This document shows positions 1 to 64,000 of a stretch of DNA of 64,000 bases, in pieces. How positions within the stretch are numbered: the first letter of the stretch is position 1; every line of letters starts with the position of its first letter. Position numbers and translations under genes: made by a program. Location of the stretch: NCBI GenBank assembly GCA_964036045.1, contig OZ038378.1:194246001-194310000 (forward strand), read 5' to 3'. The notes under the pieces were generated by a model. That model ran no database searches. It saw nothing but the letters and a program-made list of their open reading frames with translations, and had not been told where the DNA came from. Origin of the DNA: Eutreptiella sp. 'Long Island Sound 2002' (lineage: Eukaryota; Protista; Euglenida).

Positions 1-245
1 TTTCAGTCGTCCACAATGTGTTTGAGGATGATGCCATGAGGTGCCTGATGAGCAGGTCTCGGTACTCACAAGCCTGGGCTGTAGAAGCAGCGGACGCCGT
101 GAGAAAGCGGCTGCAAGCCACCGCAGAGCGGTGCCGTGCATTTCCTCGCGATTTTATGGAAGTGCGGGTCGTGCAAACCTCTCCGCAAGCCCCATGCCGT
201 ACATGCTCTGACGATTCTGACGAATGTATGGGCAGATGGGGATAG
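1..245 (+). CDS. eIF4E: eIF4E-like protein, 3' end of copy 0 (truncated by the window)
   Basis: The translation is identical to the C-terminal residues of the 445-aa ORFs at 16473, 36277 and 47420. Confidence 0.8.
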   Translation, partial: SVVHNVFEDDAMRCLMSRSRYSQAWAVEAADAVRKRLQATAERCRAFPRDFMEVRVVQTSPQAPCRTCSDDSDECMGRWG

Positions 246-14200: not shown

Positions 14201-16188
14201 GTGTTCTACTTCCCACCTTCGCCCTCTTCTGTGTGTCACCGATCACTCCACAGCAGTGCGCTCTGCCCCAAGCGAATAGTGACCCTTTGTGCCTGATTGA
14301 CCAATTGTGCCTGAATGTCATCCCCTCCCACTCTGATAGTGTATGACAAGCAACCTGCTGATTCACCTCGGCCTTCAATCTTCACTCCGCTGTCTTTTTC
14401 AGCCTACAGTCATTGTGCCTCACGCACACTGGGAAGCCTACGGGCGTGGCAGTCTCCCACTGCATAACCTGGTTTCAGACTCAGCTCATCCTCACTACGT
14501 GTCAGATCCGCTACCACAGTCATTTGTGGGATCATTGTAGCACTGGACAGCTCTGAACCTTGATTCCGAGGGGTCACCTCGAGGACTGTGAAGTAAGCAG
14601 GCTACGCCAGCTCATCTTGGTCTGAGCCAAAAAAAAAAACATTGCATATGCTAAAAAGCTAGGGCAACCGTTACCACCCCCCACCCCCCAACTGTGAGCA
14701 CCAAAAGCGCTGAAAATGATGGAAACACCATCTCGCGCTCCAATTTTAAGCTGTCAACAAGAAGAGGTGCGTTCAAGAAAGTCAAAGAGCAGATGTCAAG
14801 AAGTTGGGAAGCGAATGATGGGATGTTGCATGTAGTTTGGAACAACCATTGGAGCATGGACCCTATGCTCTTGGCCGTCCCAACGCGCCTCTTGTGGTAT
14901 ACAAACCCCTGAACAACCACCGTAGCAGCTAGGACCAACGGGAGGTCCGCGTGACCTTACATGCTATACCCTGACAACACCATCCTTTTTGTCCCTTGTA
15001 CCTTCGATAACCCCACCAACAGGGGCATGGGGAAGGTCTCTCTTCAAGGTGCCTGGCCGAAGGCAATAGAACTTCTACAACCCCAGAGATCTACACTACT
15101 TCTCTTACGGCACCTTTTTTCGGTGGTGGTGTGCACTGTAAGGAGTACAGCTTCATGCCTGGTCATGGCCGTACCCCCCCTCCCCCTTGCGCAAGCACGG
15201 CCTTGTCTAAGCACAGAGTGGTGAGAACAGTGATTTCCTGCCGGTGGGATACCTGGGGTGACGGCCATCATCGGATTATGGCTAAGCATAGAGTGGGCGT
15301 TGAAACGCTGTTTTTAGGAAATTTTGGGACCACTGTTTTTGTCGTCCCAGATGTAAGATGGGGTTTAAAACCATTCTACCACACATTACAACCCGTGATT
15401 CTTAGCCAGTCCCGATATTCCCCTTCCACAGCCTGTCACCATCTGCATCTTCTGGAAATGGGCGGTCATGTGCGTTTGCCATCATGTGTGTCGCACGCGA
15501 GCATAGTGTTGTCTAAGCACCCGGTGGCCGTTGAACCGCTGTTTAGCCTGCTTTTTGGGACCACGGCTGTGCTTGCGCAGGGGGAGGGGGGTTACATTCA
15601 ACTAGAACCACTATCCTACAAGACCTTTGGGTATTTGGCCTACAGTCTGTAATCCTGCTCCTTCGCGGGGCAATACATAGTTGATGGCTTAGCCGACATC
15701 AGTGGTCAGGGCTGTTTGCCACTCTAGCACGTGGCCCTGGTGCAGCCCTAGTGCAGCAAGGAATCCCCACTGTTCGGGACTGTATGATGCCAATGTACAG
15801 GTCAAGCGTCAGATGATTTTGAAAATTGCACCACCTTGGAAAGCAGTTTTACGCTGCAGGTCTGTGGAACTTTCTGCGTTGGTTGCAGCCATGCATTGTT
15901 GCACATTGATGTGTTGTCCAATGTATCATGGGTCACACCACTAGGCACTTTGGAAGTGCACTCCAACCCTTTGACCGTGCACCCAATGAGGAGTTCATTG
16001 CACTGCAGTTGACAACCACCTTTCCTGGGCATTTCTCCAATATAAACCTGCAAGATCTGCCCCACCAAACTCAAGCCCCAACCTGCCCAAGAGCGAAATG
16101 CACACTTGAACAAGTACAGGAGACAGTGGCTGCTTTCAGCATATCCCTGAGTCCGAACCCAGATACAAGCCATGTTTTTTACGTGTTC

Positions 16189-16268
16189 GGGGGAGCGTTA
16201 GTGCGCCAGGCCCACGCCAGGCATCTTTTTTGACCCGTGCCCCACCGGTGACCTTTTAGGGGGTGCGC
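16189..16268 (+). mobile_element. Orphan left end of a related GGGGG transposon upstream of eIF4E
   Basis: GGGGGAGCGTTAGTGCGCCAGGCCCACGCCAGGCATCTTTTTTGACCCGTGCCCCACCGGTGACCTTTTAGGGGGTGCGC matches 24008-24087. Confidence 0.8.
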
Positions 16269-16472
16269 ACTAAGTGCAGTGCGCGCGCAGTGCAACTATT
16301 TGGACATCTAGCCATCCTAGAACCCCATACTTTGTGATACCTGCAAGATCTGCCCCACCAAACTCAAGCCCCAACCTGCTCAAGAGCCAAATGCACACTT
16401 GAACAAGTACAGGAGACAAGGAGACAGTGGCCGCTTTCAGCATATCCCTGAGGCAAACCCCAGATACAAGCA

Positions 16473-17810
16473 ATGTTTTTTTCGTGTTGCATGCATTTGT
16501 GGGTTGAACGAAGTTGCTGCACAACATTTGCACATGTTGTCTCCAGTTCTCATAAGAGCTTATTTCTTGACGCACCGATGTCGACTCGCTCAGCCACGCA
16601 TTCCATGGCCAGTGACCTCATGTTGGCACAAGAGTACTGTTTCTGGAGAGACAACTACGAGGTGGTGATTGTGAAGAATAGACGCCGAAAGTCGTCGCAG
16701 TGCACTGAGCTGGTGCAGTTGAATCGCGTCACCTCATGGGGCGCGTACCAAGCAAGCGTAATCATGCACATGGCCCAGACCCCACAGAACGGCAGTCTGC
16801 ACATCTTTCGCAAGGGAATCACCCCAGAGTACGACGATCCTTTGAATCGGAATGGCGGTCTCTTTAAGCTGACGTTTCAAGCCACAAGTTGTGCTGCGGA
16901 TGCGTTCACAGTGCTGTGCGGTTCCTTCGTGCTGGGGCACGTCCCGAACCACGTGGCAGTGAATGGGGTAACATTTGCCAAAAAGGGGACGAGTTGTGGT
17001 CTGAAGGTGTGGGTTGGGAGCAGGGCCAAGCAGGTGGTGGCCCACGTTCAGGAGTGGTTCACGAAAGAATTGGATGGCTTCATCTCGTCCTGTCTGTTCT
17101 GCCCCATTGTGTCGCTGCTGACCTCCATTCAGAAGAAGCAAGCTGCACTGTGTGTGCCACCACAGCCCATCCAGCAACCACAAGGCCCAAACCCTAGAGA
17201 CGCCATCGGGATCCTCAAGGTACCACCACCACCCCCAGTGATGATGCCCGCAGTCACCACCGCAGGCAACATGGGAATCATCCCTTGGGACTTGGTGCAA
17301 CAGCCGGATGTCGCTGGCAGCCCAAGCCTGTTTCTTCTCAACGAAGCATCGTTCTCGAGTGATGGTAGCGACCCTGACACGGCTGCGTCTGGTAGATCCC
17401 TGGGATACAGCAGTCAGGCCTCCACTTCCGACGTCAATGACCGAGCACGCGATTCGCAGCTGTTGTCGCTGTCCCGAGACGAGTGTATACTGGAGCAGGC
17501 CGTTGAAGAATGTGTACAGGATGTCCAACAAATGGAGGCATCGGGTCCTCAGGTGCCTGCCGCGCTTTCAGTCGTCCACAATGTGTTTGAGGATGATGCC
17601 ATGAGGTGCCTGATGAGCAGGTCTCGGTACTCACAAGCCTGGGCTGTAGAAGCAGCGGACGCCGTGAGAAAGCGGCTGCAAGCCACCGCAGAGCGGTGCC
17701 GTGCATTTCCTCGCGATTTTATGGAAGTGCGGGTCGTGCAAACCTCTCCGCAAGCCCCATGCCGTACATGCTCTGACGATTCTGACGAATGTATGGGCAG
17801 ATGGGGATAG
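16473..17810 (+). CDS. eIF4E: Atypical eIF4E-family cap-binding-fold protein with low-complexity C-terminal extension, copy 1 (likely true start ATG at 16578)
   Basis: Motifs EYCFW, SLHIFRKGITPEYDDPLNRNGGLF and NGVTFAKKG..LKVW align with the eIF4E core (RWALW, DYSLFKDGIEPMWEDEKNKRGGRW, VVNVRAKGDKIAIW). The ORF is uninterrupted. Confidence 0.88.
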   Translation: MFFSCCMHLWVERSCCTTFAHVVSSSHKSLFLDAPMSTRSATHSMASDLMLAQEYCFWRDNYEVVIVKNRRRKSSQCTELVQLNRVTSWGAYQASVIMHMAQTPQNGSLHIFRKGITPEYDDPLNRNGGLFKLTFQATSCAADAFTVLCGSFVLGHVPNHVAVNGVTFAKKGTSCGLKVWVGSRAKQVVAHVQEWFTKELDGFISSCLFCPIVSLLTSIQKKQAALCVPPQPIQQPQGPNPRDAIGILKVPPPPPVMMPAVTTAGNMGIIPWDLVQQPDVAGSPSLFLLNEASFSSDGSDPDTAASGRSLGYSSQASTSDVNDRARDSQLLSLSRDECILEQAVEECVQDVQQMEASGPQVPAALSVVHNVFEDDAMRCLMSRSRYSQAWAVEAADAVRKRLQATAERCRAFPRDFMEVRVVQTSPQAPCRTCSDDSDECMGRWG

Positions 17811-17846
17811 TGCAAATCAGCGATGGATTTAATTTTGGCGCTACTC

Positions 17847-18418
17847 GGGGGTCCGGGTCCGGGGCCGGGGGGGGGGGGCGGTCAGTTTTTGTGACTGGTC
17901 ACAAAAAACATACAGGGCCATAGTGAGAAAGTGCGGCCCCGAAAAAATCTTGTGACCAAAAAGGTTGTCTTCGGTAGAATGTCTCCTGCGTCTGGCTGTA
18001 GTGCAAATTGACCGTGACTGTGTCTGCTTGCACTTTTGCTCCTCCTTTGCATCTATCAGTACCAGTTCATCTAGTGACAGTGGCAGCGATAGTGGCACTG
18101 GCAGCGGCAGTGACAAGTGACAGTGATGGTAGCTGCAGGGAGCAAGACAATTTTGTCACTGTGAGTGATGATAGTGAATGACATTGAGACATTGAATGAC
18201 ATTGAATGACGTTAACAATGTTGCATCCACAGGGCCCTATGCTTATCATGAGTGCTGTTGCATCACCCCCCCCCCCCCCCACCCATGTACATGTATGGGC
18301 TGAGGGCTGCCCCAAACCCCTGGTTTTAGGTCACCTTTTTTTGTGACCAGATATTGTGACCTTTTTCATGACCAAGGGGAGGGGGGTTGGTGAGGGACCC
18401 CGGACCCCCCCCCCCCCC
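17847..18418. mobile_element. MITE-like element, copy 1
   Basis: 11-bp inverted repeat GGGGGTCCGGG (17847) / CCCGGACCCCC (18399) plus inverted TGTGACC subterminal motifs. Confidence 0.55.
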
Positions 18419-24103: not shown

Positions 24104-24812
24104 GGACAATCTTTGAATCCACGCTTCGTTGCGTGCTGCATCATGGTGACCCCCGGCGTAGGTTTTGACTTCCGATTTTGTTCCCTTTGTTGGGGACCCC
24201 CGAGAATGCAGGGGTGATGTAGCATTTCCGCCCTCTTTTGGGCCCCAACCGTCCGGTGCTATTGACGAAACCGGGACAATCTTTGAATCCACGCTTTGTT
24301 GCGTGGTGCATCATGGTGACCCCCGGCGTAGGTTTTGAGTTTTGATTTTGTTCCCTTTGTTGGGGACCCCCGAGAATGCAGGGGTGATGTAGCATTTCCG
24401 CCCTCTTTTGGGCCCCAACCGTCCGGTGCTATTGAGGAAACCGGGACGATCTTTGAATCCACGCTTTGTTGCGTGGTGCATCATGGTGACCCCCGGCGTA
24501 GGTTTTGACTTCCGATTTTGTTCCCTTTGTTGGGGACCCCCGAGAATGCAAGGGTGATGTAGCATTTCCGCCCTCTTTTGGGCCCCAACCGTCCGGTGCT
24601 ATTGAGGAAACCGGGACAATCTTTGAATCCACGCTTTGTTGCGTGGTGCATCATGGTGACCCCCGGCGTAGCTTTTGAGTTTTGATTTTGTTCCCTTTGT
24701 TGGGGACCCCCGAGAATGCAGGGGTGATGTAGCATTTCCGCCCTCTTTTGGGCCCCAACCGTCCGGTACTATTGAGGAAACCGGGACAGTCTTTGAATCC
24801 ACGCTTTGTTGC
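24104..24812 (+). repeat. 170-bp tandem repeat (4 full units plus a partial) inside the transposon
   Basis: Unit starts at 24104, 24274, 24444, 24614 and 24784. Confidence 0.95.
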
Positions 24813-24844
24813 TTGTGTTGTTGTTTGTGTCCAATTCGCGCGTA

Positions 24845-25518
24845 CCATTGGCGGGATATGGAGTGCAGACCTGTGGAATCCTAAGTATGCGTCGCATGTT
24901 TACAAGGTCACTGTTGCCGTTGATATGTTGGGCAACATTGTATGGATTTGCCCCTTGGCCCCCGGGACATCAGCAGATGTTTTGATTTGGGATGGGTACG
25001 GACCTTCTCGTACCCGAGGGGATTTCTTTGATTTTGAAGTTGGGGGCCATGATGGCGCTTATAAAGGCCGGATTCATGTCATTGTGCCATTCATTGGAAG
25101 AAAGAATGGCACTTTGACAGCCCGCCAACAAGGTTACAATGATGTCCATGGGTGGTACAGGGCACGCATTGAGCAGCTGTTTGCTCGGTTGTGGCATTGG
25201 GGTTTGGTTAGGAACATCTGGCGTGGCGGCCCCAATGAGTTGCACCAGCCAGTCCGCATTTTGTTGCATTTCACTCCGTTTTGCATCCGGAGGCAAGTCC
25301 GTCACCCCCCCTACGGACCATGGGAGCATGTCCCGCCTCAGGTTTGGACTGACCAAAGCAACTCGGCCGCCACGCAAGATGAGGCAGAGGATGAGGCGGA
25401 AGTGTGTGTTTTGTGTTGCCAAAGGCGCTCCACCGTCGCAGTTTGTGATGAGTGTAAGGAGCAATATTGTAATGAATGTATTGACCCCCACACTTGTGGG
25501 ACCAATGTTGTTTGTTAA
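24845..25518 (+). pseudogene. Harbinger-type transposase, C-terminal part (second D and E present, first D deleted), with terminal Cys/His finger
   Basis: YKVTVAVDMLGNIVWI, PGTSAD, GHDGAY, RARIEQLF (D-39-E) and CVLCCQRRSTVAVCDECKEQYCNECIDPHTC. Confidence 0.85.
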
Positions 25519-34359: not shown

Positions 34360-35723
34360 GGGGGAACGTTAGCGCGCCGGGCGCGCGCCGGGCATCTTTT
34401 TGGACCCGTGCCCCACCGGTGACCTTTTAGGGGGTGCGCTAAGGGGGCGCACTTAGGACAATCTTTGAATCCACGCTTCGTTGCGTGCTGCATCATGGTG
34501 ACCCCCGGCGTAGGTTTTGACTTCCGATTTTGTTCCCTTTGTTGGGGACCCCCGAGAATGCAGGGGTGATGTAGCATTTCCGCCCTCTTTTGGGCCCCAA
34601 CCGTCCGGTGCTATTGAGTCATTGTTTCGATTTTTCTTCTGGATGAAACACACCCCACCGGCAGAGAGCGGTGCTTTCATGTCTCACGCAGAAGGTTCGG
34701 AGGTTGCCTGGCGGCAGAGTGTTGCCCGTGCTCGCGAATACCTTAACCATGTTGTTCAAGAGATTCGATGGGCCGACAGGTTGAATCCTTTCAACCATTG
34801 TCCCCATTTTCCATTCTTTATGATGCATTTCACAGACTCCATGCCCATCAGTTCCATTGGCGGGATATGGAGTGCAGACCTGTGGAATCCTAAGTATGCG
34901 TCGCATGTTTACAAGGTCACTGTTGCCGTTGATATGTTGGGCAACATTGTATGGATTTGCCCCTTGGCCCCCGGGACATCAGCAGATGTTTTGATTTGGG
35001 ATGGGTACGGACCTTCTCGTACCCGAGGGGATTTCTTTGATTTTGAAGTTGGGGGCCATAATGGCGCTTATAAAGGCCGGATTCATGTCATTGTGCCATT
35101 CATTGGAAGAAAGAATGGCACTTTGACAGCCCGCCAACAAGGTTACAATGATGTCCATGGGTGGTACAGGGCACGCATTGAGCAGCTGTTTGCTCGGTTG
35201 TGGCATTGGGGTTTGGTTAGGAACATCTGGCGTGGCGGCCCCAATGAGTTGCACCAGCCAGTCCGCATTTTGTTGCATTTCACTCCGTTTTGCATCCGGA
35301 GGCAAGTCCGTCACCCCCCCTACGGACCATGGGAGCATGTCCCGCCTCAGGTTTGGACTGACCAAAGCAACTCGGCCGCCACGCAAGATGAGGCAGAGGA
35401 TGAGGCGGAAGTGTGTGTTTTGTGTTGCCAAAGGCGCTCCACCGTCGCAGTTTGTGATGAGTGTAAGGAGCAATATTGTAATGAATGTATTGACCCCCAC
35501 ACTTGTGGGACCAATGTTGTTTGTTAAGTGCAACACAAATGACAGTTGGAGTGGTTGAAGTCACAGATATTGCTTTATTTTGCAACGTGCTTTGTAGGGA
35601 AGGTGTGCAGTGCAATGTGGTCTACTTGGGGGGCTTCTCCATGGGAGGGTAAATCTGGGGCTGAAGTCGGGATAGTTAATACAAAAGTAGCGCGCCGGGC
35701 GCGCGCCGGGCAAACATTCCCCC
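34360..35723 (+). mobile_element. PIF/Harbinger-type DNA transposon, internally deleted, 1364 bp, TSD AAT
   Basis: GGGGGAACGTT...AACATTCCCCC termini; AAT at 34357-34359 and 35724-35726; empty site GTCCAATGTATC at about 15917. Confidence 0.92.
34613..35527 (+). pseudogene. Harbinger-type transposase lacking its N-terminus; first D (HFTDS) and E present, second D mutated to N
   Basis: IESLFRFFFWMKH...HFTDSMP...GHNGAY...RARIEQLF. The frame stays open back to 34517 within the 170-bp unit. Confidence 0.85.
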
Positions 35724-36276: not shown

Positions 36277-37614
36277 ATGTTTTTTTCGTGTTGCATGCAA
36301 TTGTGGGTTGAACGAAGTTGCTGCACAACATTTGCACATGTTGTCTCCAGTTCTCATAAAAGCTTATTTCTTGACGCACCGATGTCGACTCGCTCAGCCA
36401 CGCATTCCATGGCCAGTGACCTCATGTTGGCACAAGAGTACTGTTTCTGGAGAGACAACTACGAGGTGGTGATTGTGAAGAATAGACGCCGAAAGTCGTC
36501 GCAGCGCACTGAGCTGGTGCAGTTGAATCGCGTCACCTCATGGGGCGCGTACCAAGCAAGCGTAATCATGCACATGGCCCAGACCCCACAGAACGGCAGT
36601 CTGCACATCTTTCGCAAGGGAATCACCCCAGAGTACGAAGATCCTTTGAATCGGAATGGCGGTCTCTTTAAGCTGACGTTTCAAGCCACAAGTTGTGCTG
36701 CGGATGCGTTCACAGCGCTGTGCGGTTCCTTCGTGCTGGGGCACCTCCCGAACCACGTGGCAGTGAATGGGGTAACATTTGCCAAAAAGGGGACGAGTTG
36801 TGGTCTGAAGGTGTGGGTTGGGAGCAGGGCCAAGCAGGTGGTGGCCCACGTTCAGGAGTGGTTCACGAAAGAATTGGATGGCTTCATCTTGTCCTGTCTG
36901 TTCTGCCCCATTGTGTCGCTGCTGACCTCCATTCAGAAGAAGCAAGCTGCACTGTGTGTGCCACCACAGCCCATCCAGCAACCACAAGGCCCAAACCCTA
37001 GAGACGCCATCGGGATCCTCAAGGTACCACCACCACCCCCAGTGATGATGCCCGCAGTCACCACCACAGGCAACATGGGAATCATCCCTTGGGACTTGGT
37101 GCAACAGCCGGATGTCGCTGGCAGCCCAAGCCTGTTTCTTCTCAACGAAGCATCGTTCTCGAGTGATGGTAGCGACCCTGACACGGCTGCGTCTGGTAGA
37201 TCCCTGGGATACAGCAGTCAGGCCTCCACTTCCGACGTCAATGACCGAGCACGCGATTCGCAGCTGTTGTCGCTGTCCCGAGACGAGTGTATACTGGAGC
37301 AGGCCGTTGAAGAATGTGTACAGGATGTCCAACAAATGGAGGCATCGGGTCCTCAGGTGCCTGCCGCGCTTTCAGTCGTCCACAATGTGTTTGAGGATGA
37401 TGCCATGAGGTGCCTGATGAGCAGGTCTCGGTACTCACAAGCCTGGGCTGTAGAAGCAGCGGACGCCGTGAGAAAGCGGCTGCAAGCCACCGCAGAGCGG
37501 TGCCGTGCATTTCCTCGCGATTTTATGGAAGTGCGGGTCGTGCAAACCTCTCCGCAAGCCCCATGCCGTACATGCTCTGACGATTCTGACGAATGTATGG
37601 GCAGATGGGGATAG
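36277..37614 (+). CDS. eIF4E: Atypical eIF4E-family protein, copy 2 (likely start 36382)
   Basis: 445-aa ORF that differs from copy 1 by only a few residues; same eIF4E motifs (PEYED). Confidence 0.88.
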   Translation: MFFSCCMQLWVERSCCTTFAHVVSSSHKSLFLDAPMSTRSATHSMASDLMLAQEYCFWRDNYEVVIVKNRRRKSSQRTELVQLNRVTSWGAYQASVIMHMAQTPQNGSLHIFRKGITPEYEDPLNRNGGLFKLTFQATSCAADAFTALCGSFVLGHLPNHVAVNGVTFAKKGTSCGLKVWVGSRAKQVVAHVQEWFTKELDGFILSCLFCPIVSLLTSIQKKQAALCVPPQPIQQPQGPNPRDAIGILKVPPPPPVMMPAVTTTGNMGIIPWDLVQQPDVAGSPSLFLLNEASFSSDGSDPDTAASGRSLGYSSQASTSDVNDRARDSQLLSLSRDECILEQAVEECVQDVQQMEASGPQVPAALSVVHNVFEDDAMRCLMSRSRYSQAWAVEAADAVRKRLQATAERCRAFPRDFMEVRVVQTSPQAPCRTCSDDSDECMGRWG

Positions 37615-47419: not shown

Positions 47420-48757
47420 ATGTTTTTTTCGTGTTGCATGCATTTGTGGGTTGAACGAAGTTGCTGCACAACATTTGCACATGTTGTCTCCAGTTCTCAT
47501 AAGAGCTTATTTCTTGACGCACCGATGTCGACTCGCTCAGCCACGCATTCCATGGCCAGTGACCTCATGTTGGCACAAGAGTACTGTTTCTGGAGAGACA
47601 ACTACGAGGTGGTGATTGTGAAGAATAGACGCCGAAAGTCGTCGCAGCGCACTGAGCTGGTGCAGTTGAATCGCGTCACCTCATGGGGCGCGTACCAAGC
47701 AAGCGTAATCATGCACATGGCCCAGACCCCACAGAACGGCAGTCTGCACATCTTTCGCAAGGGAATCGCCCCAGAGTACGAAGATCCTTTGAATCGGAAT
47801 GGCGGTCTCTTTAAGCTGACGTTTCAAGCCACAAGTTGTGCTGCGGATGCGTTCACAGTGCTGTGCGGTTCCTTCGTGCTGGGGCACCTCCCGAACCACG
47901 TGGCAGTGAATGGGGTAACATTTGCCAAAAAGGGGACGAGTTGTGGTCTGAAGGTGTGGGTTGGGAGCAGGGCCAAGCAGGTGGTGGCCCACGTTCAGGA
48001 GTGGTTCACGAAAGAATTGGATGGCTTCATCTCGTCCTGTCTGTTCTGCCCCATTGTGTCGCTGCTGACCTCCATTCAGAAGAAGCAAGCTGCACTGTGT
48101 GTGCCACCACAGCCCATCCAGCAACCACAAGGCCCAAACCCTAGAGACGCCATCGGGATCCTCAAGGTACCACCACCACCCCCAGTGATGATGCCCGCAG
48201 TCACCACCGCAGGCAACATGGGAATCATCCCTTGGGACTTGGTGCAACAGCCGGATGTCGCTGGCAGCCCAAGCCTGTTTCTTCTCAACGAAGCATCGTT
48301 CTCGAGTGATGGTAGCGACCCTGACACGGCTGCGTCTGGTAGATCCCTGGGATACAGCAGTCAGGCCTCCACTTCCGACGTCAATGACCGAGCACGCGAT
48401 TCGCAGCTGTTGTCGCTGTCCCGAGACGAGTGTATACTGGAGCAGGCCGTTGAAGAATGTGTACAGGATGTCCAACAAATGGAGGCATCGGGTCCTCAGG
48501 TGCCTGCCGCGCTTTCAGTCGTCCACAATGTGTTTGAGGATGATGCCATGAGGTGCCTGATGAGCAGGTCTCGGTACTCACAAGCCTGGGCTGTAGAAGC
48601 AGCGGACGCCGTGAGAAAGCGGCTGCAAGCCACCGCAGAGCGGTGCCGTGCATTTCCTCGCGATTTTATGGAAGTGCGGGTCGTGCAAACCTCTCCGCAA
48701 GCCCCATGCCGTACATGCTCTGACGATTCTGACGAATGTATGGGCAGATGGGGATAG
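47420..48757 (+). CDS. eIF4E: Atypical eIF4E-family protein, copy 3 (likely start 47525)
   Basis: 445-aa ORF, near-identical to copies 1 and 2. Confidence 0.88.
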   Translation: MFFSCCMHLWVERSCCTTFAHVVSSSHKSLFLDAPMSTRSATHSMASDLMLAQEYCFWRDNYEVVIVKNRRRKSSQRTELVQLNRVTSWGAYQASVIMHMAQTPQNGSLHIFRKGIAPEYEDPLNRNGGLFKLTFQATSCAADAFTVLCGSFVLGHLPNHVAVNGVTFAKKGTSCGLKVWVGSRAKQVVAHVQEWFTKELDGFISSCLFCPIVSLLTSIQKKQAALCVPPQPIQQPQGPNPRDAIGILKVPPPPPVMMPAVTTAGNMGIIPWDLVQQPDVAGSPSLFLLNEASFSSDGSDPDTAASGRSLGYSSQASTSDVNDRARDSQLLSLSRDECILEQAVEECVQDVQQMEASGPQVPAALSVVHNVFEDDAMRCLMSRSRYSQAWAVEAADAVRKRLQATAERCRAFPRDFMEVRVVQTSPQAPCRTCSDDSDECMGRWG

Positions 48758-60784: not shown

Positions 60785-60810
60785 ACTTTCTGAGTGTCTA
60801 TTTTTTTTCG
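60785..60810 (+). other. Full-length euglenid spliced-leader exon sequence in genomic DNA
   Basis: ACTTTCTGAGTGTCTATTTTTTTTCG is the 26-nt Euglena SL as I recall it. It is followed by a 14-nt UTR and ATG, not by a GT donor. Confidence 0.92.
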
Positions 60811-60824
60811 ATTTTATTTCGTCC

Positions 60825-61727
60825 ATGGCTGAGCTGTGGTTCCGGAGGAGGGCGATCCCTCTCTGGAAAGAAGTTCGGTCAATAGCCGAAGCCACGATGG
60901 AGAAAGAAGTGGACGCTCGGATTGTGTCCAACTCACTGACTACACCAACACTCCGGCAGCCGCTTCCGGACAACGGCGGGCCGCTGGCGGACTCTTCCAA
61001 GAGCATCCCACGAAGCATTGACAGGAGATGGCGGATGATACCAGGGGACGGCAGGATCGTCGGCAAGGCAAATGCCAAGGCCGACAGCCGGCCTCACGCT
61101 GATCTACTGCCGCAGAAGAGTTCTGACAAAATTCCCAATTTTATGCTGCAGTTTGGATACCCATTTGCACGGGACCCCAAAAACCCTCGAAGTGGGCACG
61201 GAGATCCTGAGCCCAATTCAGCTTTCAAGTTTGGTGACCATGACGTGCAGCACAATGCAGGAGACAACATACCTAATGAGCTGGAAGTGCAACGCAATGC
61301 AGGAGGCAACATTCTTAATGAGCTGGAGGTGCAGTGCACTGCAGGAGGCAGCATTCCTAATGAGCGAGAAGCGCAGCGCCATGCAGGAGGCAACATTCCT
61401 AATGAGCTGGAAGTGCAGCACGATGCAGGAGGCAACGTTCCTAATGAGCTGGAAGTGCGGCGCAATGCAGGAGGCGACATTCTTAATGAGCTGGAAGTGC
61501 AGCACAATGCAAGAGGCAACATTTCTAACGAGCTGGCAACAAGCCCCGCGCCCTGTCGCGGAGGGTCTCACTGGTGTTATGCCACCGGTGAGAACACGGA
61601 CCTATTCCCCTCCAAGCGCCCCGTCTTTGGATGTGTGAAGGATGGGTTTGACGTCATTATGAAGATCAGTAACACCCCAACCGACTGCCGCGACAGCCCA
61701 CAGGATCCGGGGGGAGGATTCAAATGA
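60825..61727 (+). CDS. 300-aa unknown protein with seven 14-aa repeats (retrogene)
   Basis: ATG 14 nt after the SL and an open frame to TGA at 61727, with repeats EVQHNAGGNIPNEL. No family recognised. Confidence 0.7.
   Translation: MAELWFRRRAIPLWKEVRSIAEATMEKEVDARIVSNSLTTPTLRQPLPDNGGPLADSSKSIPRSIDRRWRMIPGDGRIVGKANAKADSRPHADLLPQKSSDKIPNFMLQFGYPFARDPKNPRSGHGDPEPNSAFKFGDHDVQHNAGDNIPNELEVQRNAGGNILNELEVQCTAGGSIPNEREAQRHAGGNIPNELEVQHDAGGNVPNELEVRRNAGGDILNELEVQHNARGNISNELATSPAPCRGGSHWCYATGENTDLFPSKRPVFGCVKDGFDVIMKISNTPTDCRDSPQDPGGGFK
61242..61535 (+). repeat. In-frame 42-bp tandem repeat x7
   Basis: Units start at 61242, 61284, 61326, 61368, 61410, 61452 and 61494. Confidence 0.95.
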
Positions 61728-63911: not shown

Positions 63912-64000
63912 ATGTTTTTTTCGTGTTGCATGCAATTGTGGGTTGAACGAAGTTGCTGCACAACATTTGCACATGTTGTCTCCAGTTCTCATAAGAGCTT
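63912..64000 (+). CDS. eIF4E: Start of the eIF4E-like ORF, copy 4 (only the upstream extension; cut by the window end)
   Basis: Sequence matches 16473-16561 and is preceded by the same orphan transposon left end. Confidence 0.6.
   Translation, partial: MFFSCCMQLWVERSCCTTFAHVVSSSHKS

Follow-up and report, generated by a model that had tools for sequence, protein, structure and literature searches.

The window analysed here is a stretch of 64,000 nucleotides (nt) from the euglenid Eutreptiella sp. 'Long Island Sound 2002' (contig OZ038378.1, positions 194,246,001 to 194,310,000 of the forward strand; coordinates below are those of the window), and our subject is an amplified gene in it that encodes a protein of the family of the cap-binding translation factor eIF4E. 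The open reading frame (ORF) at 16473..17810 on the forward strand, 445 codons plus stop, is copy 1 of this gene. A sequence-only reading of the window had counted at least five near-identical copies, and five there are, three intact and two cut by the window ends. The copies, and the parts of copy 1, are as follows.

1..245, forward strand: 3' end of another copy, which the window start truncates (self-BLAST).
16473..17810, forward strand: longest ORF of copy 1; its first 35 codons are probably 5' untranslated region (UTR), and the upstream codons lack coding conservation in paralogs.
36277..37614, forward strand: copy 2, an intact 445-codon ORF with 8 nt differences from copy 1, 7 of them nonsynonymous.
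47420..48757, forward strand: copy 3, an intact 445-codon ORF with 4 nt differences from copy 1, all nonsynonymous.
63912..64000, forward strand: 5' end of another copy, which the window end truncates (self-BLAST).
16578..17810, forward strand: probable coding sequence of copy 1 from M36, 410 residues, identical to the cluster representative P0001.
16608..17177, forward strand: eIF4E core domain, ORF residues 46-235 (from Pfam, AlphaFold2, Foldseek and alignment columns).
16671..16688, forward strand: VKNRRR (residues 67-72), the basic tip of a long beta1-beta2 hairpin, as predicted (from DSSP of the model and the alignment).
17178..17594, forward strand: Pro/Ser-rich tail linker, predicted to be disordered, evolving faster than the core.
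17595..17696, forward strand: conserved C-terminal helical module, ORF residues 375-408, with the pattern LM..SR....W...RL..T..C.
17697..17807, forward strand: C-terminal end, an aromatic residue or Met followed by Gly; RWG here, HFG, IYG, VFG or IMG in relatives.

Translation probably does not start at the ATG at 16473, as gene callers and paralogs begin at M36 (16578) or at M46 (16608), the latter being the alternative start wherever M36 has been lost. Counted from M46, the protein consists of a core of ~190 residues and a tail of roughly 215 residues. The tail, described from the sequence as ~220 disordered residues, is indeed mostly disordered, with P0001 residues 195-339 forming a disordered linker in a full-length prediction, but not wholly so, because a conserved helical module occupies P0001 residues 340-373. 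Two helices predicted there (340-347 and 353-373; predicted local distance difference test (pLDDT) 61-71) coincide with the module, in which M346, R350, W355, R366, L367 and T370 (P0001 numbering) are invariant. The module is common to Eutreptiella and Euglena mutabilis-group relatives at ~30% overall identity, and most members terminate in an aromatic residue or Met, then Gly. A Pfam search with the tails of four members of the euglenid clade described below returned no domain, and an ESM Atlas search with the tail module gave no usable match.

The core is an eIF4E by profile and by predicted fold. Residues 51-200 match the Pfam family IF4E (PF01652; E 6.8e-13, 49.1 bits against a curated cut-off of 28.7), and hhalign against canonical eIF4E profiles gives a probability of 99.6; single-sequence matches to solved eIF4Es are weak (best E 1.4e-3, phmmer). 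The structure prediction proposed with the sequence-only reading bears out the assignment: an AlphaFold2 model of the core, built from a 92-sequence alignment, has a mean pLDDT of 93.8 and a predicted template modelling score of 0.88, and the top 50 Foldseek matches are all eIF4Es, including Leishmania IF4E-1, yeast, 4EHP and human (prob 1.0, TM 0.64-0.78), in agreement with the cupped-hand alpha/beta fold of this family. Where canonical eIF4E has the W56-carrying S1-S2 loop, the model places a long beta-hairpin with strands at ORF residues 50-66 and 73-88 and a strongly basic tip in the KNRRRK region.

In eIF4E, aromatic residues at W56 and W102 sandwich the 7-methylguanosine (m7G) of the cap, W166 and an acidic residue at 103 recognise N7-methylguanine, and W73 in the motif (S/T)V(E/D)(E/D)FW binds eIF4G and 4E-BP. 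To map these positions we aligned 95 homologues with MAFFT and used HMMER profile alignments to PDB chains, phmmer, and hhalign against canonical homologues; labels of the series W43-W166 denote human eIF4E positions and those of the series Y55-W180 the 445-codon ORF. The key codons are Y62 (16656), Q76 (16698), W89 (16737), Q93 (16749), Y120 (16830) and W180 (17010).

Most of the substitutions that had been read from the sequence hold up. The W102 position is Tyr (Y120) in the phmmer, profile and hhalign alignments, and the PEYD/ED motif around it carries D121 in copy 1 and E121 in copies 2 and 3. W43 is replaced by Tyr (Y55; the alignments agree), W46 and W166 are kept as W58 and W180, the latter invariant in 92 homologues, and the W113 position is F131. 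At W56 a gapless count from helix alpha1 gives Q76; because the stretch between Y62 and W89 holds no W, Y, F or H, the position is non-aromatic in any register, as had been claimed. The pair of aromatics at W56 and W102 that makes up the m7G sandwich is accordingly incomplete, whereas the pair recognising N7-methylguanine is present (W180 with D121 or E121). Basic residues at R157 and K162 had been listed as retained; K171 does match R157, but nothing corresponds strictly to K162, although K170 and K178 lie close by. The subfamily shows no variation at Y120, W58 or W180, nor in the GG motif. In the paralog P0004, SWQ stands where the window copies read SSQ, and its Trp, aligned to S75, adjoins the W56 column. 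Y62 was considered as a substitute for W56, but across the 95 homologues the counts for an aromatic at W46+4 against loss of the W56 aromatic (47, 25, 14 and 9) are too untidy to make that case.

The dorsal surface is also altered. Where the sequence-only reading had the eIF4G-binding motif lost to SWGAYQ, Gln (Q93) does stand at the W73 position, but a Trp (W89) remains one helical turn earlier. We accept the register with Q93 at W73 and W89 at human V69 because the family sequence VTSWGAYQ aligns without gaps to VTSWEQFW in closer relatives, with the same spacing to the flanking conserved blocks, and because helix alpha1 of the AlphaFold2 model begins at W89, that is, at the human V69 position. 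In this register Trp at W73 within the eIF4G/4E-BP motif, the mark of class I, is missing. Both phmmer and hhalign offer an alternative in which a 4-column gap puts W89 on W73, making the W73 assignment register-dependent. In the accepted register W89 lies on the same helix face as the W73 position, inside the eIF4G/4E-BP contact surface. The sequence-only reading had named restoration of W56 and W73 by alignment, or a want of transcripts, as what would count against it; W56 is not restored, W73 is restored only in the alternative register, and transcripts were found (below). By sequence and model, then, the cap pocket appears reduced and remodelled and the dorsal surface altered, with a conserved module in the tail.

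These features are not private to the window. A word-based search with the core finds family members only and none outside, and we therefore ran an exhaustive profile search, which returned 230 matches at E<=1e-3. The nearest matches outside the family are euglenid proteins, several of them with an N-terminal core and a long tail: P0038 and P0040 of Eutreptiella, P0041-P0043 of the Euglena mutabilis group, EG_transcript_5210 of Euglena gracilis, and proteins of Jenningsia, Anisonema and Entosiphon. In a maximum-likelihood tree, a single branch (43 rows; Shimodaira-Hasegawa-like approximate likelihood ratio test (SH-aLRT) 98) sets apart every protein with Tyr at W102, and the window family forms a 10-row clade with support 100, borne on a long stem within a subclade of 21 rows (support 99). 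All named members of this Tyr-102 clade are euglenid (Entosiphon, Euglena gracilis, E. mutabilis, Eutreptiella, Jenningsia, Anisonema), which places the window gene in a euglenid-only, euglenid-wide clade and agrees with the euglenozoan affinity suggested for it. The clade markers, a P-x-Y-(D/E)-D motif and an aromatic residue four positions after W46, are present in the window gene. Against PDB chains, a profile of the clade finds canonical eIF4E and 4EHP at 1e-21 to 1e-14. Orthology with kinetoplastid EIF4E5 or EIF4E6 was considered and rejected, as the clade profile finds no such chain at E<=1, yet reaches canonical eIF4E at 1e-21; the Tyr at 102 common to the euglenid clade and EIF4E5 therefore looks convergent in sequence comparison. 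A description of the euglenid Tyr-102 clade was not found in the literature searched, which lay mostly outside subscription journals.

The exhaustive search also returned proteins of other kinds. P0088, P0097 and P0130 are very long (746-922 residues) with one or more eIF4E-like stretches, and P0059 has six eIF4E-matching stretches in 1156 residues. P0072 (219 residues; ENA contig of 878585 nt), P0094, P0101, P0121 and P0134 make up a separate short-loop eIF4E group that has Trp at W102 and, at W46+4, Met. The ENA contig, from which one member of the group comes, is possibly of the same assembly; if so, the genome also has more conventional eIF4E paralogs.

Within Eutreptiella the window gene belongs to a large and expressed subfamily. 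A word-based protein search yields ten cluster representatives at 56-99% identity, with 16, 5 and 10 members in the three clusters queried, and one 2.5-Mb contig holds at least 12 of the ENA members of the P0001 cluster; altogether there are roughly 40 copies on at least eight contigs, with identity down to 56% and all frames open. Between subfamilies the eIF4E core is under purifying selection. By the Nei-Gojobori method, the ratio of nonsynonymous to synonymous substitution rates (dN/dS) is 0.18-0.33 for the core in deep pairs (dS 0.35-1.1), about 0.34-0.48 for the C-terminal part in deep pairs, 0.46-0.68 for the linker and 0.32-0.71 for the whole gene in diverged paralog pairs, with dS between paralogs reaching 1.2. 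The gene is also transcribed. Logan contigs from three estuary metatranscriptomes cover 16492-17897 at >=99% without joints, whereas in the same data 15668-16200, a stretch of 530 bp, has no cover at all, and proteins from the transcriptome of a cultured Eutreptiella braarudii strain (MMETSP, in EukProt) are identical to paralogs (P0033/P0034, 100%) or nearly so (P0038/P0186, 99.8%). Matches as close as these speak for Eutreptiella, rather than Euglena gracilis, as the source of the DNA. JGI contigs L003 and L004 encode the same protein. The RNA contigs are colinear with the gene, and the genomic ORF of a paralog equals a transcript-derived protein, in support of the claim that the gene has no introns.

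In the window, the coding sequences of the copies differ by 4-8 nt per 1338 (about 99% alike), and the copies lie at irregular spacings of 11-20 kb in a transposon-rich mosaic of segmental repeats that are 93-99% identical. Because the copies have flanks in common, their amplification occurred at the DNA level: the recent copies have clearly spread by segmental duplication in transposon-rich DNA, and we explain the gene best as a single unit in a tandem or segmental array. The surroundings contain the following.

24748-25518, forward strand: PIF/Harbinger-type transposase fragment (DDE_Tnp_4); context, outside the gene.
34517..35527, forward strand: PIF/Harbinger-type transposase fragment (DDE_Tnp_4), ~750 bp upstream of copy 2; context, outside the gene.
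17818..18241, strand not assigned: 424-bp insertion directly after the stop codon, which L003 lacks but L004 and the window copies carry.

The two transposase fragments are 99.7% identical, and the one upstream of copy 2 is missing from the equivalent place at copy 1. The 424-bp insertion contains G- and C-homopolymer runs and, where present, would alter the 3' UTR; at the paralog loci L005 and L007 the gap after the stop codon is larger, extending to 18471. Just upstream of the gene, a stretch at 16204-16337 has a summed contig depth in the RNA runs ~10-fold above that of the gene, many RNA contigs leave it into unrelated sequence, and two 150-bp direct repeats of 89% identity flank it (16046-16187 and 16339-16488); it is probably a highly repeated, transcribed small element resembling a short interspersed or miniature inverted-repeat transposable element. 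An Rfam scan of the whole window gave no match.

Such a setting invites the explanation that the array copies are redundant passengers of transposon-driven segmental duplication, drifting towards pseudogenes under no selection for dosage. It would account for a repeat mosaic with Harbinger transposase fragments and insertions between units, for the irregular spacing, for an excess of nonsynonymous differences, and for coding sequences that have diverged only slightly less (0.3-0.6%) than their flanks (0.5-1.3%). We nevertheless give it little credence, as the full frame is kept in every copy examined and contigs of the window subtype occur in the three metatranscriptomes, while the copies are too young for dN/dS to have the power to detect constraint.

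The sequence-only reading had also offered a recently amplified retrogene. Its first half stands, given the young copies with shared flanks, whereas a retrogene is not the main story because the family is old (dS up to 1.2, core dN/dS 0.18-0.33), belongs to a euglenid-wide clade and was duplicated at the DNA level. One trace that would suit it is a short feature at the head of the long ORF, ~130 nt upstream of M46.

16473..16484, forward strand: T-run ending in CG (ATGTTTTTTTCG), a possible spliced-leader relic or polypyrimidine tract.

In the sister copy L003 the T-run is ATTTTTTTTCG, identical to the final 11 nt of the spliced leader, and a T-run with CG is conserved in the P0001, P0002, P0004 and P0005 groups. 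A subfamily founder that arose as a retrogene from a spliced-leader-capped mRNA and was later multiplied as DNA would explain these traces together with the intronless gene, and it would not be alone, as a spliced-leader-headed retrocopy lies at 60787 in the same window. Several observations weaken the case for such a founder, however, to which we give a low probability: homology among paralogs extends upstream of the T-run, no poly(A) relic was seen after the stop codon, the deeper paralogs P0006, P0007 and P0010 lack the T-run, and the T-run may be a mere polypyrimidine tract. Moreover, the genomic P0034 and P0186 ORFs match transcript-derived proteins without a break, and the lack of introns is therefore not special to the window branch.

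The euglenid spliced leader TTTCTGAGTGTCTATTTTTTTTCG occurs exactly once in the window, at 60787-60810, and the dinoflagellate spliced leader has no match in it at up to 3 mismatches; a dinoflagellate origin was rejected accordingly. The exact 24-nt leader heads the stretch 60787-61727 on the forward strand, and an ATG comes 18 nt after it; the ORF within the stretch has tandem repeats resembling 'NAGGNIPNELEVQ' and, towards its C-terminal end, a fragment of cyclophilin type (Pfam Pro_isomerase, E 3.8e-6). The whole looks like a retrocopy of a trans-spliced mRNA.

Altogether, we lean, by a modest margin of confidence, towards a model whereby the window protein is an atypical cap-binding adaptor or regulator that acts outside canonical eIF4F, in a Eutreptiella subfamily of the old euglenid Tyr-102 clade. 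In this model, cap contact would be kept through a reduced pocket made up of Y120, D/E121, W180 and nearby lysines, while the long basic beta-hairpin would replace the second stacking Trp and might touch phosphates or the spliced leader's first nucleotides. A canonical eIF4F complex is unlikely because Gln occupies the W73 position and a His-Pro-Leu motif is absent, and partners might instead be recruited through the conserved C-terminal helical module and the aromatic-Gly end. The protein could then serve as a specialised cap-binding adaptor or regulator, either a repressor or a selective activator. By analogy, Y83 of Trypanosoma cruzi EIF4E5 (TcEIF4E5), H51 of T. brucei EIF4E6 (TbEIF4E6) and the W56 position of eIF4E3 provide precedents for eIF4Es that function despite substitutions.

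Several points weigh against this model. No aromatic residue can be placed at W56; the only one close by, Y62, lies on the predicted beta1 strand, where it may face either the cap slot or the dorsal side. The R112 position is Leu. EIF4E6, with what appear to be milder changes than those of the window protein, nonetheless binds caps poorly or not at all in some laboratories in the case of Leishmania and T. brucei (PMC10810786). The three window copies, compared with one another, have nonsynonymous to synonymous differences of 7:1, 4:0 and 5:1, with no detectable constraint. The RNA evidence consists of assembled contigs, from which the expressed copy cannot be distinguished, and no spliced-leader junction was seen on the RNA contigs, which end at 16492 and 16557 without loose leader sequence.

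Part of this evidence would suit a cap-independent pseudo-eIF4E, whose fold serves as a scaffold, as a decoy for 4E-binding partners or in direct RNA binding through the basic hairpin, with the tail used for localisation. The non-aromatic W56 position, the change of R112 to Leu, the Gln at W73 and the strongly basic hairpin tip KNRRRK all point that way, and EIF4E6 provides precedents of weak or absent cap binding (PMC10810786). The m7G-specific residues (Tyr at W102, acidic 103 and W166), on the other hand, are invariant under purifying selection, which is unexpected for an unused pocket, and we regard a pseudo-eIF4E as unlikely, though the strongest competitor to the cap-binding adaptor or regulator that we prefer. 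Going a step further, and with slightly less confidence than we grant to the pseudo-eIF4E, we speculate that the clade is an undescribed euglenid class of cap binders in which a rebuilt sandwich (Tyr 102 plus the basic hairpin) reads the trimethylguanosine-capped spliced leader, and that the ~40-copy Eutreptiella branch lacking the eIF4G-binding Trp might act as a dosage-dependent selector or repressor through its C-terminal docking module.

Euglenid mRNAs are trans-spliced and trimethylguanosine-capped, yet the cap-binding proteins of euglenids are almost unstudied. Our results point to eIF4E-like proteins that form a whole clade in euglenids, with the cap pocket rebuilt and a module conserved in the tail; one branch of the clade, heavily amplified and expressed, lacks two of the three functionally critical tryptophan positions. 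Should these proteins bind caps, they would add a third way of recognising a cap to the Trp-Trp sandwich and the mode of eIF4E3, and would help to show how translation selects spliced-leader mRNAs; should they not, they would exemplify in nature an eIF4E fold put to new use as a scaffold. The claim is modest either way, as divergent eIF4E paralogs are already the rule in Euglenozoa: this is a new variant of the eIF4E family and not a new kind of system.

Among known eIF4Es, trypanosomatid EIF4E5 (Group 3; 6o7y) is similar in being euglenozoan, in its Tyr at W102 and in its long, remodelled S1-S2 connection; in TcEIF4E5 this Tyr (Y83) stacks on m7G and the S1-S2 region is long (PMC6582342). EIF4E5 is not a general translation factor (PMC6582342, PMC5750579). 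It differs from the window protein in keeping a Trp (W33) at the W56 position and in keeping W73, and its ~195-220 residues include no C-terminal tail. With T. brucei EIF4E6 the window protein has in common that no aromatic stands at W73, where TbEIF4E6 has His (H51) and still binds EIF4G5, its cap binding being weak or disputed (PMC10810786); in contrast, EIF4E6 has Phe at W56 and W102, is a single-copy protein of 186 residues without a tail, and shows no specific sequence affinity to the euglenid Tyr-102 clade. Compared with kinetoplastid Group 3 as a whole, for which the trypanosomatid eIF4E groups and their residues have been tabulated (PMC5750579), the window protein shows no specific relatedness in sequence (clade profile, E<=1), has 410 residues including a tail versus ~180-220, and lacks an aromatic residue at W56.

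Metazoan eIF4E3 (Class III) and 4EHP/eIF4E2 (Class II) are similar in that one stacking Trp, W56, is substituted, and among PDB sequences it is 4EHP that matches the clade profile best (7.8e-21). In Class II, W43 and W56 are changed to other aromatic residues, and in Class III W56 is changed to Cys or Tyr (PMC5750579), with W102 presumably unchanged in both; eIF4E3 retains a functional cap pocket despite Cys in place of its W56, and in both classes the pocket works at lower affinity and the roles are regulatory, not general (PMC6582342). Unlike the window protein, eIF4E3 and 4EHP both keep W102 and W73, and neither has a long C-terminal tail or is amplified. With W43 changed to Tyr, Gln or Ser at the W56 position and W102 changed to Tyr, the window protein departs from both classes and, with the missing W73 of the accepted register, falls by its residues outside all three eIF4E class definitions.

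The nematode and flatworm eIF4Es that bind m2,2,7G caps keep the canonical Trp sandwich. They resemble the window protein in their setting, in which the host trans-splices its mRNAs and caps them with trimethylguanosine, as is the case for the spliced-leader mRNAs of Euglena (PMC3388326), and such mRNAs lead one to expect dedicated or dual-specificity cap binders in euglenids. The only analysis of euglenid eIF4Es that we found covers E. gracilis only, and its text describes two proteins apparently orthologous to EIF4E1 (PMC5862402). Each single substitution in the window protein has a precedent in other eIF4Es, while their combination, the tail and the ~40-fold amplification are new.

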